A DNA stretch of 64,000 nucleotides. Source: Trichoplax adhaerens. Taxonomy: Eukaryota > Animalia > Placozoa. The notes below the pieces were generated by a model that was not told the DNA's origin, did no database searches, and was given only the letters and a program-made list of their open reading frames with translations. Location of the stretch: contig NW_002060944.1 in the NCBI RefSeq assembly GCF_000150275.1, positions 3,848,123 to 3,912,122 of the forward strand. The letters are read 5' to 3'. A program made the translations under genes and the position numbers. Positions 3,536 through 10,066 of the stretch are shown one piece after another. Numbering within the stretch: position 1 is the stretch's first letter; the number at the start of each line of letters is the position of its first letter.

Positions 3536-4394
3536 GAAATAATACCCATCTTGTTCGTATTCATCTGTTGGATATTACGAATTACTTTTGATCTTGAAAC
3601 TATCATGGCGGTAAATTACCATGAAGTGTAAATTTGCTATATTGGTTGACTTTAAAGGATACTATTTCAAGCGCTTAATTGAATAAGTAGTTTGTAGTGT
3701 ACTATCAATTTTGTAGCTACAACATACCGTACAGTACTTCTAGACTTTTGCTTGCGGTAGGAATTACTACAGTACAACTTATGCGTTATAACATATTTAC
3801 ATTATGAAGTTGATGCATAATTTCAGGCGTAGGCAATGGTAGTCATTAGGAACTTATTTATGCCTATTACAGGATTCGAGTAGAAAGTACATTTTGTAAT
3901 TATACAGAGATAGTGACCCTAAATAAGCAAATATATTTAGGAGTTAAGAAATATTCATTACTTTCCTAATGTCGCAATAGAAGTTTATGATATAAAGATT
4001 CAACAGGACTAATATCGGTAGTGAAAAGAGATCATAATTCTGTTAGCTTTATTCGTACGGAATTACAATCGGCGTATATTGATAGTATCTGGGTTTATAA
4101 TTATAATTAATATCATCCAGACAGTTTATTTTACTAGTAGCAATTAATTCAAACAGACCTAGTAAGACCTTTGTTATATAATAGTATTAAGCTAAAAATA
4201 GCTTAAATGGCTATAGCGATAGATGATCTCTATTTATCCACGTTGCTCAATTACAATTGTGATAGTTAATAATAATAGCTAAACTGGCTTAAGTACCTAG
4301 ATTTTACATGCATTCTAATATCATTAACATTATTATTACCAGTACTGAAGGACATTAAATATATATAGTATCGTATCAGCACTACTACGATAAG

Positions 4395-5186
4395 TTATGC
4401 ATCATAGCTCGAATATGAATTTAAATGATATTGCATATCAGTATATAGGTGTTCGAGAGTTTCTACCTTATTCTCGTCACTTCCATTACTATCGTACCAA
4501 CAACATTCAAATTTTTTATCAAGAATTTCTGGATAGCTTCGAGGATTATTTATAAGAACCGACATAAACGGAAGATTGTCATTACAATCGCGGATAATAT
4601 TTTCTAAACATGGTCTAAAGTGTCTACATTCAGTTCTACTTCTATTATTGCAGTCTTCATAAATTAAAATTGCTAATCGAAAATGTCGAATAAGTTCAGA
4701 GTAAACAGTAGGATGTATTTTATGAGGAGTAGTACTCGACATTTCCATAATTTCGCCATCGAAACATGTGCTCATCAGGGATTGTATCTTTTCAGCAAAC
4801 TTGATGCTATGCGAAAAGTGGCAGTATCGTATGAATAGGACTTTTTCTGTGTTTTTAAAGAACATAGGTAATTAGCAAGTCTATACAATAACTTAGATAT
4901 ATTCAATCATCTGGTAATTATTTTACATATTTATCTGAAAATAGAACGTTAATATACAGTACAATGAAATTTTATTTTCGTTTATACATTTTGTAAGTGT
5001 AATAGATCGTGTAAAAGTATGGTATCTTAGAGATACCGTAAGTTGTTAATTTCTTGTAAAATTAGAAATGAAATTTTTTAGCTTATAGAATAATTATGAA
5101 AGATAAATACTTCTAATATTCCTATTCAGATGTTATCAATGCTTCCCATAATTTAGGATGCTTACTAGCAATATTGATTAGTGAAT

Positions 5187-5217
<31 letters not shown>

Positions 5218-7805
5218 ATAGTAAGTGTAATAAAATTCACAGTAGTCTAAACGTTGTTAGATAATAATAGGCTATTTTATTACGTTTGTTAGGAGATCAG
5301 TGTCAAGACCAGAGATTGAGGAACTCGACTGTAATAAGTAATAACTTGGCTTATATACAACGATCTTATGCATTTGTGATTCGCACTGCACATTGCATAT
5401 TACACATTAATGATTACCTTATTAGATAAGGTTGCTGACGTTAACATAATTAAGATAAGGTCTCTGTACTAATATAAATCCTCCTATACTGACGTTAGTA
5501 ACTATTCTTATCAATTAATATTACAGTAAGTAAATGTTGTAAAGCATCCATCTATCGAGGTTATAAATTTAAAAAAGTGTGACAAATAGTAAACGATGAC
5601 AGAAATCATTAAGATTCTATATTTGTATTTCGTGATGCATATAGTGCATTTACTACGACATGAATGAATACGATACGCTATAAAATGACTGTTTACAATA
5701 TATACGTTGACTACCAATTAATCCTAATGGAATATAATGGTTATGTTCTAATAAGACTTTAACTCGATTCAATCTTAAATTATCGTACGTATTTCGGGAA
5801 GTAATNNNNNNNNNNNNNNNNNNNNNNNNNNNNNNNNNNNNNNNNNNNNNNNNNNAGTCGTGGATTTATTTGGTTTCGATGGCTTGTTATGAATAGAAAG
5901 GTATAATATAGTATACATTAACATAAATATAATAGTTTATAAAAAATCAATAACTATAACTAAAAAATTTGAAGTAAAAAATGAATATTTAACTTATTAC
6001 TTGTCTCTAGATTGAACTCAGTCTATAACCACTCTAATATCATCTACAGGACTTACTAGATCATTACTGTAGATTTTGTAAATACAATATAATGTTAATT
6101 TTAATCACTTTAAAATTATCAAAGATTGCAAGACATAACTATCATATTACAATCTTACCACGATCGCTTTTAATTTCCATTCGCATCAATACTTTCTTAA
6201 AGTATGAGAGTTTAGTGCGAGGATCAGGTACGAATATGACAACTAGGATTACAATCACAATTAGACCTCCAACATTACTCAGTGTAATGACTAAGACTTC
6301 TGGCTTATCTTGTTAATTAATACATAAGAATAAAGAAAAAGAGAGATTAATTATTGAAAGCTACTTATTGAGAAAAATTATTAGCTTTACTTAATCGATG
6401 GCTCTTCTAACAATTGAGATTAATTAGAATTGAAATTTATAGAGTATATATTTAGCTGATGAATACTTGCCAGTAATTAAACTTAGTAAAGCAACATCAA
6501 TTATGGTCAATAATAAATCTTACCGTCTTCAACTATGAAGAATTGTGATTCTGAACGTTGGCAAAGATTAACCGATGTACATGAAATATTTCCAATCTGT
6601 TCAGGTTGATTTCGATCTACTATCAAAGTACTGTGAATAGTTCCATTAGTGTCTTTAATATTCTTAATACGTCTTGATGGAATGTCTGAGCACTGGCCAT
6701 TATGACATCGTTTCCACAGTATCTTTGGCATTGGATTTCCACTAGCAGTACAACTAATGAGTGTGGTTGTTCCAGGAGTAGGTTTTTTACTTTCGACGAT
6801 ACCACGATTCATACATTCTATATAGATTATAATAATTTCACCTAAGTATTATAATCAGTAAACGATCAGAATCACTCTGAGATGAATATTGCATTTCTAC
6901 TATTCCANNNNNNNNNNNNNNNNNNNNNNNNNNNNNNNNNNNNNNNNNNNNNNNNNNGAATAAAATTATAAGTAACACTTTTTTTTCATCGCCGACGAAC
7001 AAGAAGCAAAGTTGGTAATGATCTTTGTACTATCATAGACTATAGGCCTAATATCATTATCTTGGCAAATATCGTAAAATTGTGTTTCTTTCACACATTC
7101 ATCCCTGCAGTCGAATTTATTAAATTTTATTCCAAATGTAAGATTATACGGAAATTTGTAGTATCCATATTGTGGTGATGGAAAGGGAGATACTTCACAG
7201 TATTGTCCATCTTAATAGACCATGAAAATAGACGATAAAAAAGTGCATACTCAATTCCAGAATAAATTTCGTTTAAAATAGTAAAAATAAGAATAATTCG
7301 TCACTATCAAATACTCAAATCCTTATCTTAAACTACGACAAGTGTCAACTAGAAAGTTGAAATGGAAGTAAACAGTCAAATAGAATTTAGCATAAAATTC
7401 ACTCTAAGCTACCATTAGTGTACCAACTAGAATCGGGTTCTTGCAAATCTAGGCAATGTAGCTTACATAATGCAGTCTGCAATGACTAGAACAATTTTTT
7501 TCAATTATTTGCTATTTTTAAGAGCTATGATACTCTATTTTTTTAATCATTTACTAAGAATATAATAGGATCATTTATTTAATATTATTGGATATGTCTT
7601 GAGTTTATAGAATCTAAGATGATCAAGCATTAGCATAAAGTAATATTCGTATAGCTATTATCCATCTTTCAACGACAATCGTGCCAATAATACCTAATAA
7701 ATTGTTTTCTTCGGCACAAATGCCTTTAGGTTCACTCAGAGTACATTTGAAAAGTAGGACCAACAAAAAAAGTCTTGCTTGATCCATTTCTAATATATCT
7801 GCCAT
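4395..7805 (-). CDS. Type I membrane receptor: signal peptide, two Ig-like domains, TM helix, putative SEFIR/TIR-like cytoplasmic domain (copy 2)
   Basis: Exons: 7805-7694 (MADILEMDQARLFLLVLLFKCTLS), 7210 to the gap at 6957 (Ig1), 6817-6524 (I-set Ig: LISCTASGNPMPKILWKR...STLIV...GNISCTSVN), 6308-6159 (TM: VLVITLSNVGGLIVIVILVVIFV) and 4846-4395 (KVLFIRY...FRPCLENIIRD...YPEIL...LEHLYTDMQ). All visible junctions are GT-AG and phase 1. There is one apparent frameshift in an A8 run next to the gap. Confidence 0.65.
5806..5855. other. Assembly gap (50 N)
   Basis: Run of N. Confidence 1.
6908..6957. other. Assembly gap (50 N) hiding the end of the Ig1 exon of copy 2
   Basis: Run of N. The flanks correspond to copy 1 at about 1300 and about 1167, so the real gap is probably longer than 50 bp. 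Confidence 0.95.
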
Positions 7806-9729
7806 CCAATAGTTAATTAGCTTCATACTAATCCGATAGTACAAGCAGCTATATTGAATATTTCATTTATGGACGAGATAAAGTGCTCTGCGAGATGATG
7901 ACAAACTATAAAATACGGAAGTTCACGACTTTCATCAATATTCTAATCGAATAGATTACAATGATTATTTATAAACTGTAAAACTTTATTTATGTCTGCA
8001 AATGCGGGCATTAATTATTTTCATATGTTTAATGAGGAAACTAAAATAGGATTACTACCACAAGTAAGTTTTTATTGTACATCCTTAAAAAACAGAATGT
8101 AAATAAACACGGAAAAATTGATGAAAAACGTGTAATGTCCAATCAGATTCATCTAAGTACTAAGGACAATTTCGTGGTACTGTATTTAAAGAAACATTGA
8201 TAGGAGATATTTAATCGTTCGGAATCCAATATAAGCTTAGGTGTAAAGTAGAGCTAAGACAGTCAATCTCCAAGAATAAGTGTCCGAATTGAAGAAGAGA
8301 TCAATGATCACCAATGGCTATACCGAAATACCTTACTAATTCTCCACGCTAACTATTAGTAAAATTTTAAAAGTAAGGTACAGAACATAAATGGAAAGAT
8401 ACTCAACTGTTCAATTTCTTCAAGCATAATTATAAAATTTAAACGGCAAAAGATTGGATAAAGTAAATAATGATTAATAATTTATATTGTACTCAATTAA
8501 TGTACAGAATCCTATTCTACGATATTTAATCTTCCTAAGTTTCTTCACCTTAGCTAGTAATAAATGTAATACAATATGCAAAGCATAAACATGAAAATAT
8601 TAAATTATTTATTTTTCTTTTTTTAACAAAATTACGTCTAAAGTGTAGCTGAAGATGATTATATCATAATATTACTGGTAAAGGACAATCAAAATTTACT
8701 GTAATATATCAGTTATAGGGTCGAGATTTTTTTTTAATTTTCGACTTTGGCCGCTATCTAGAGTGTCGTATGAAGTATAAATACGATACTGATATGAAAA
8801 TATTCCACACATTTGATGTCGATTCCGGGATAAATCGTGAATTTTGATGGATATAGCGTTTTACTTATGTTGGCAACTGATACACAATTTGCATCCACAA
8901 TTCGAAATTAATACCAGCAAAACTGATGATGTTGTTGCGGGCGGTTAGTTTTACAATAACTTCAACTGCTTGTTCAATTTCCTATCTCTCGGGCCGATTG
9001 AGAGTAGTATGAGTCTTTAATACAGTCAAAAGTATTAACTAGATATTCATACATAACATATATTAAGGATCACTTTTGATCTCGAAATTTTAACGGCGGT
9101 AGATCACCATGAACTATAAATTTACTATATTGATTAACCGAAAAGGACACTATTTCAATCATAAAATTAAATAAGCTTCTAGTATATTGCCATTTTTGTG
9201 GCTATAACGTATACCCTCAGTAGTATTCCTAGATATTTTACTTGCGGTAGGATTATTACTGCAACTTATACATTATAAGATAGTTACATTATGAGGCGAA
9301 TCCATAACAAATAATTCATTATTAAGAAATAATTTTTTATAAAGGAGGTTTCTGACCAAAATATTTAAAAGAACCTGTGTGCAGATTAGAAAGTGTAGAG
9401 AAGTGAGAATTTTGCAAGAATCATCCGGACGAAATTGCAATCACTGTAATTTGAAAAAACGCGTATATTGGTTCAAAATATCATCCAGTCAGTTTATCTT
9501 GCTAGTGACAATTGATTTTGTCTTTGAACTATTAAGACCTTCATGATATTACTAGAGTAAAAAGGTTAGACGATAACAGCGATGGATGATCTCCTTGGAA
9601 ACTGTAAAAAGTTCTTAAACAATTTCAGTTACATTAATTTTCCATATCATAAGTAACGTGAAGGCATGCAGACTTATACTTGCACATTGTCTGTGATGTG
9701 AAATACTCTAGTAAACGATTTGGCGCGGA

Positions 9730-10066
9730 GAAAATAAATTAAAATTGCAATAAATAGTCTCACAAAATTATATTTACCAATGCTATCCATTGTCCACTTT
9801 TGAAGTACTAAGTAATATTGTACATAGAACAGCCACCTATCTTCAAGTTAGAACAGGAAGCATCGGTAATAATTGTGTTATGGTTATTGTCAACAACGGT
9901 ATCATTTCTAAGAAAACAGTAATTGGCAAAAGTTAAACATTTGTTTCTTAAACCGTCATTATTAAATCTTATCCCAAATGTAATATTATACGGTAAGCCA
10001 TAATAGCCATACTGCAAAGAGTGTACAAGTTCTAGCTGGGCAAGGTTTATTTTCATCGGCATCAAG
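9730..10066 (-). pseudogene. Ig receptor copy 3 fragment (Ig1 exon only, frameshifted)
   Basis: LQYGYYGLPYNITFGIRFNN...ASCS...YN aligns with the Ig1 exons of copies 1 and 2. After the TAG at 9808 a shifted frame continues LVLQKWTMDSIGKYNF (Ig F-strand motif). No Ig2 or TM exon follows. Confidence 0.7.

Follow-up and report, generated by a model that had tools for sequence, protein, structure and literature searches.

On the minus strand of a 64,000-nucleotide stretch of Trichoplax adhaerens DNA (contig NW_002060944.1, positions 3,848,123 to 3,912,122; hereafter, the window), positions 4395-7805 raise the question of which signalling domain a placozoan immunoglobulin (Ig) receptor carries on its cytoplasmic side. 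The original prediction for this locus was a receptor with two Ig domains, a transmembrane (TM) segment and a SEFIR tail, that is, a mixture of the interleukin-1 receptor (IL-1R) and interleukin-17 receptor (IL-17R) architectures. According to Kamm et al. 2019 (PMC6321704), placozoans possess no TM protein with a TIR domain, but they do possess one TM-SEFIR protein, two MyD88-like TIR-CARD proteins and one SEFIR-DD protein. In the same study, the downstream NF-kB components were found to be present and the recognition arm was left "speculative". As described below, our analysis leads, with slightly better than even confidence, to an expressed T. adhaerens gene for a type-I receptor composed of a signal peptide, a V-like Ig, an I-set/C2-like Ig, a TM segment and a cryptic TIR-like tail. 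TIR homology of the tail is probable, not proven. The existing signal points to TIR, and we therefore read the architecture as an IL-1R-like Ig-Ig-TM-TIR-like layout and not as an IL-1R/IL-17R hybrid.

The tail is encoded by an open reading frame (ORF) at 4395-4865 on the minus strand, which is present and codes for 156 amino acids. The minus-strand sequence on its 5' side reads ...gCTAATtacctatgttctttaaaaacaCAG/AAAAAGTCC, and a CTAAT, a pyrimidine tract and a CAG, all confirmed in the sequence, lead to an exon start at 4846 in phase 1. The TM exon ends with ...GATCGTG/gtaag at 6159, also in phase 1, and the joined reading is ...IKSDR-E-KVLFIRY. We placed Logan contigs of four public runs (X1, X4, X6 and X15) on positions 4300-7900 of the window. 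One spliced X6 contig (record 20) contains the joint 4846/6159 exactly as predicted, with 35 nucleotides (nt) on the short side. This contig covers 6819-6524, 6308-6159 and the 35 nt from 4846, and it therefore also carries the joint 6308/6524. A further joint, 7210/7694, was found in two runs, X4 and X6. All three joints have CT..AC ends (GT..AG when read along the minus strand). None of the contigs of the four runs joins the short exon near 6068, through which the transcripts might instead have ended. Every readable intron boundary is in phase 1, and intron 2, the donor of which lies inside an assembly gap, is in phase 1 by length arithmetic. The transcript extends to at least 7900, since the X4 and X6 contigs with the joint 7694/7210 reach 7896-7900, and its 3' untranslated region extends past 4300 (contigs cover 4300-4810). 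Further in-frame ATGs for exon 1 are located at 7826 and 7805. Thus, Ig, TM and cytoplasmic-domain exons are joined on one transcript in the spliced contigs, as expected for an IL-1R-like layout. We are highly confident that the gene model, a minus-strand gene in which ORF 4395-4865 is the last exon, is correct.

Domain searches were performed exon by exon. In exon 3, Pfam detected the membrane-proximal Ig domain (Ig_3, E 3.9e-8; I-set, E 4.8e-6). Exon 4 encodes a hydrophobic stretch of 23 residues followed by basic residues. The sequenced fragment of exon 2 had no Pfam match. It is 47% identical to an exon at 1531-1319 and 34% identical to an exon at 10038-9826, and it is homologous to the first-type, V-set-like Ig domain of the paralogs. 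For one such paralog domain (P0011:296-432), the Atlas feature neighbours were V-set Ig clusters (0.93, 171 shared features) and the Atlas structural neighbours were Ig proteins including IL1RAPL1 (TM-scores 0.62-0.70). As judged from this homologous domain of a paralog, the first ectodomain exon probably encodes a V-like Ig, which we regard as a lead. Of the predicted Ig-Ig-TM arrangement, the membrane-proximal Ig and the TM exon are therefore supported, and the first Ig is probable.

The fold of the tail was predicted with AlphaFold2 and a 12-sequence alignment. The model of the window tail had a mean predicted local distance difference test (pLDDT) value of 87.7 and a predicted template modelling (pTM) score of 0.84, and its elements are ordered b-a-b-a-b-a-b-a-b-a (b, strand; a, helix), with helices 1, 3 and 5 long and helices 2 and 4 short. 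The same order was obtained for the 26%-identical tail of an annotated paralog, TRIADDRAFT_53320 (pLDDT 80.4). On these models, the fold class is certain: the tail is predicted to adopt the flavodoxin-like, TIR/SEFIR-type fold that had been expected for it. Both models were then compared with 48,161 PDB representatives by VIA-align. The RPS4/RRS1 TIR ranked first for both, and TIR domains gave the lowest root-mean-square deviation (rmsd). For the first model, the scores were 13.0 for the RPS4/RRS1 TIR (4c6t chain D), 12.6 for the RPS4 TIR alone, 12.1 for RUN1 and 11.7 for RPV1. This structural preference, seen in predicted models, is consistent with a TIR relationship but is not decisive.

Signals of the same direction were obtained from the sequences. 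All of the nearest named Atlas clusters by language-model features were TIR (0.92 and 0.90). For profile-profile comparison by hhalign, we built a TIR profile from seven Trichoplax TIR_2 exons. The tail family scored 22.4 against this profile (P 0.0085), and the alignment was colinear over 123 columns (9-148 versus 4-139). Column-permuted nulls scored 9.5 +/- 1.8 and 10.6 +/- 1.8 (maxima 14.0 and 15.7; n = 100 each) and reversed-profile controls 10.1-10.2. The family scored 12.8 against E. coli REC and 10.3 against flavodoxin, or 12.7 when placozoan flavodoxin fragments were added. Under the same set-up, SEFIR versus TIR, which is an accepted distant pair, scored 21.5, and the remaining cross-pairs 10.8-15.7. 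Therefore, by this measure the family is as TIR-like as SEFIR is, and lies above the same-fold controls. It should be mentioned that the SEFIR and TIR profiles are shallow, word-based homolog searches having added only two near-identical proteins to each, and that no information was gained when single TIR and SEFIR sequences were used in hhalign. Inspection of the family alignment by eye shows that strand 1 is of the VLFIRY type and that an HP in the betaB-alphaB loop and a W at strand 5 are conserved; the E of "lEsI" is replaced by K or R in some members. A comparison of these motifs with the TIR boxes is a lead only.

Several results weigh against the reading as an expressed receptor with a TIR-like tail. 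The contigs are of low depth, and the joint 6159/4846 is carried by a single contig. The hhalign probability for the family and TIR is only 4.7%. When the family was split three ways, the TIR score fell to 16.0-18.6, and the subfamily of the window scored at a similar level with SEFIR (18.7, not colinear), TIR (16.4) and flavodoxin (15.9). Pfam hmmscan at E<=10 with the tails of 12 family members (that of the window and 11 relatives) gave no match to any model, TIR and TIR_2 included, six-frame TIR (PF01582) and TIR_2 (PF13676) scans of the genome had no match at this locus or its paralogs, and a profile search of 1.84 billion proteins recruited no TIR protein. Close to the position of the catalytic Glu of TIR, the alignment has a Glu that some family members lack. 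In Foldseek, the top matches were flavodoxins, WrbA and FMN reductases with weak E values of about 1e-4, and flavodoxin-like domains are level with TIR in the VIA-align Z score.

The main rival explanation sees in the tail an alpha/beta (flavodoxin-like) domain specific to the lineage, with neither the ancestry nor the mechanism of TIR, and possibly another docking or regulatory module. The TIR resemblance would then arise because the three-layer fold is very common. The tie in VIA-align, the lead of flavodoxins in Foldseek, the lack of a link to any family at the level of hidden Markov models (HMMs) and the subfamily hhalign scores, which do not discriminate, all fit this explanation. In contrast, a TIR domain is the top VIA-align match of two models with the lowest rmsd, the named language-model neighbours are without exception TIR, and the whole-family hhalign alignment with TIR is colinear and exceeds those with REC and flavodoxin in score. 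Moreover, a flavodoxin is not indicated by Pfam, which gave no match, and direct reading of the alignment revealed no phosphate loop of the T/S-x-T-G-x-T type after strand 1. Finally, the tail directly follows the TM segment of an Ig receptor, which is the position of TIR in IL-1R-like proteins. We consider a lineage-specific domain without TIR ancestry rather unlikely.

None of the sequence tests identified the tail as a SEFIR domain, and SEFIR membership is rejected. The Pfam search of the 12 members at E<=10 detected no SEFIR, whereas a true Trichoplax SEFIR exon, used as a positive control (L007, G000:C1414:6761542-6761997), scored 31.5 bits. A six-frame SEFIR scan of the genome matched only at L007 and at a second locus (L008, C1390:206086-206280), not at the window locus. 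L007 is a single-exon SEFIR of 179 amino acids that also has a weak TIR_2 match; L007 and L008 probably correspond to the SEFIR proteins of Kamm et al. 2019. Sequence (phmmer) and profile (hmmsearch) searches of the PDB at E<=10 found no IL-17R or Act1 chain, and gave chance matches only (the Dlg1/MPP7/Lin-7C fusion chain 3lra, E 0.87; periphilin, 0.23). Against a three-sequence placozoan SEFIR profile, the whole family scored 14.7 in hhalign, which equals the 13.4 of the reversed profile. No SEFIR structure appeared in the top 50 of three VIA-align structural lists. The ectodomain, being composed of an Ig_3/I-set and a V-like Ig, is not of the fibronectin type III (FnIII)-like kind. In favour of the predicted hybrid, in which an Ig receptor with an IL-17R-type tail would signal through an Act1/CIKS-like SEFIR adaptor, SEFIR has the same superfold as the tail, and placozoans do possess an adaptor-like SEFIR-DD protein (Kamm et al. 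2019). The local score of 18.7 between the window subfamily and placozoan SEFIR, around INNPRSYP / NGLPEYIP, could also be counted for it. However, we rejected this alignment: it spans 78 columns only and its first half is out of register. At the level of sequence, the SEFIR tail is thus largely refuted, and we regard it as improbable.

The coordinates of the gene are given in Table 1. The assembly gap in exon 2 was spanned by the contigs: X1 and X15 join 6907/6958 with 133 letters between them, and an X4 contig runs from 7212 to 6958, continues with 112 unplaced letters and then goes directly to 6819 (joint 6819/6958). Because of this X4 contig, exon 2 must extend beyond 6958 within the gap, which leaves about 107 nt for intron 2. 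At 6979, within a run of A, the contigs of X1, X4 and X15 have one A fewer than the assembly. Therefore, the TAA that the assembly shows before the gap is a frame artefact or a polymorphism. After this correction, exon 2 has 252 + 114 = 366 nt, a length compatible with phase 1 at its two boundaries, and all sequenced exons are open. Thirty letters at a loose end in X6 read ...IHAFTELKAR before ECMNRG, which matches the ...LxA(R/Q)-EC ends of the first domains of the paralogs. A second gap (5806-5855) lies inside intron 4 and is spanned by X1 with 161 letters. X1 and X15 also carry a 7-nt insertion, ATATTCA, behind 6819 (6819/6820), which is absent from the assembly. Intron 4 contains a dispersed repeat at 5268-5509, for which the summed depth in X1 is about 1000 with at least 10 variant contigs; within the window, the repeat is single by blastn. 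In addition, a spliced plus-strand transcript, antisense to the receptor gene, covers 4796-4867 and 5293-5805 and overlaps the acceptor of exon 5. Its X4 contig (record 12, 1877 nt) has the joint 4864/5290 with GT..AG on the plus strand and runs into the gap at 5806. The upstream loose end of this antisense transcript (X4 and X6) starts with 15 letters located at 2465-2479, and no long ORF was seen on this strand.

Table 1. Exons, intron 4 and the exon 2 gap of the receptor gene (window coordinates, in order of transcription).
Feature	Position	Strand	Description
Exon 1	7694..7787	-	Start codon and signal peptide (MDQARLFLLVLLFKCTLS...); ends in phase 1; donor GT 7693-7692
Exon 2, sequenced part	6958..7210	-	Cys-rich first ectodomain; ~114 nt more inside the gap
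Assembly gap	6908-6957		50 N in the assembly, actual length 133 nt; contains the last part of exon 2 and the first part of intron 2
Exon 3	6524..6817	-	Ig domain (Ig_3 / I-set); phase 1 at both ends; acceptor tatAG 6819-6818
Exon 4	6159..6308	-	Stalk, TM helix (VLVITLSNVGGLIVIVILVVIFV), basic juxtamembrane stretch; phase-1 donor
Intron 4	4847..6158	-	1312 nt as assembled; contains gap 5806-5855 and the dispersed repeat
Exon 5	4395..4846	-	Cytoplasmic domain of 149 amino acids, predicted alpha/beta, TIR-like; stop TAA 4397-4395

Paralogs of the tail exon were found elsewhere in the genome (E 4e-29, 9e-8 and 2e-7), as was a relative in the runs of another organism (43% identical, E 6.7e-20). Because of these relatives, the tail exon is not a chance ORF. 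On the same scaffold, the tail paralogs are 91% (with two stops), 38% and 28-29% identical to the window tail, and each is preceded by a TM exon. Annotated proteins that join Ig, TM and the tail domain are TRIADDRAFT_53319 (XP_002109921), TRIADDRAFT_53320 (XP_002109922) and RDD36528 of Trichoplax sp. H2. The tails of the two TRIADDRAFT proteins are 38% and 26% identical to that of the window; both are annotated as "Ig-like domain-containing protein", and the tail has no Pfam label. When a profile of four paralogs was searched against 1.84 billion cluster representatives, only 10 proteins matched at E<=0.001. We traced the origins of seven of them: two are the annotated Trichoplax proteins, P0001, P0004, P0005 and P0007 come from runs SRR30664515-17, and P0006 comes from an ENA contig. 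The product of the window gene itself was not among these 10 matches. Thus, unlike its two paralogs, the window gene seems to be unannotated, which fits the expectation that it had been missed because of the gaps. In the organism of SRR30664515-17, which we infer to be another placozoan, contigs L009 and L049 carry [V-like Ig][Ig][TM][tail] exon modules in tandem, and the four-exon layout of the window gene recurs in both. At 1060-7165 of L049 (SRR30664517), 7 kb contain two tail genes in head-to-tail orientation, the first Ig-TM-tail and the second V-like Ig-Ig-TM-tail. The family is therefore tandemly arrayed in two species, and it appears to be small and restricted to placozoans. Our literature search found no paper citing the paralog identifiers and none describing such a placozoan Ig receptor family.

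Next to the window gene, on the same strand, a downstream paralog has exons at 377-505 (TM), 746-1042 (Ig) and 1319-1531 (V-like), which are 60%, 72% and 47% identical to those of the window gene. Its tail exon (L002), located 0.5-1.0 kb before the start of the window, is the 91%-identical copy and contains one TGA and one TAA. Unless these stops are assembly errors, this paralog is a probable pseudogene. An X4 contig with 43 mismatches and the joint 5004/6519 was assigned to the 91% paralog and not to the window gene. Upstream of the gene, a V-like first-domain exon (9826-10038, minus strand) with 34% identity to exon 2 may belong to an additional member of the array or be a relic. The window gene is one copy in a head-to-tail array that includes a probably decayed copy. 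That the window copy is itself a non-functional or decaying member with noise transcripts, as the stops in its neighbour, the stop shown by the assembly before the gap and the low contig depths could suggest, is very improbable, because its sequenced exons are all open, the apparent stop is gone in three runs, its splice sites are canonical, and its tail has retained 26-38% identity to those of paralogs together with an intact predicted fold.

How does the receptor with a TIR-like tail compare with known systems? Ig-TIR receptors are known in cnidarians, and multiple origins of this layout have been supposed (PMC2858798). In comparison with the IL-1R-like and Ig-TIR receptors of cnidarians (including Hydra HyTRR-1/2) and vertebrate IL-1R, the Trichoplax tail matches no TIR HMM and the first Ig, V-like and rich in Cys, is unusual; we do not claim orthology. 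As in IL-17 receptors, the protein is single-pass with a predicted STIR-type (TIR/SEFIR) alpha/beta fold in the tail. Unlike them, it has an Ig instead of an FnIII ectodomain and no SEFIR signal, and the true Trichoplax SEFIR loci are elsewhere. It has its exon modules and tail domain in common with TRIADDRAFT_53319/53320 and RDD36528, and the TRIADDRAFT paralogs are on the same scaffold. The TIR domains of plant NLR proteins act as NADases, and their catalytic Glu is conserved. This Glu is not conserved in the Trichoplax tail family, and identity to the plant TIR domains (RPS4, RUN1, RPP1) is 8-14%, in an entirely different protein context.

If the tail is a TIR-like domain, a mechanism can be proposed from the architecture, by analogy with IL-1R-like and Hydra HyTRR receptors. 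The Ig domains would bind an extracellular ligand, and clustering driven by this ligand would bring the TIR-like tails together. Through homotypic contacts, TIR/SEFIR adaptors from the cytosol might next be recruited to the clustered tails; candidates for these adaptors are the MyD88-like TIR-CARD proteins listed by Kamm et al. 2019.

Tandem arrays are typical of fast-evolving recognition receptors. Tentatively, and with a little less than even confidence, we propose a wider reading: placozoans may possess transmembrane TIR-type receptors, which have been overlooked since their TIR domain diverged past HMM detection. Their tails would form a third, sequence-distinct branch of STIR domains, and the receptors, encoded in a tandem array with birth-and-death evolution, and would be the receptor arm upstream of the MyD88-like adaptors. 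Should the TIR link fail, an ordinary lineage-specific Ig receptor family remains. If the link is true, an Ig receptor family with an HMM-invisible TIR-like tail would provide candidate receptors for the placozoan TIR/SEFIR pathway, and the Ig-TIR layout would be extended to Placozoa, beside the cnidarian and vertebrate cases. It would then follow that domain-based immune-gene censuses in early-branching animals can overlook whole receptor families.

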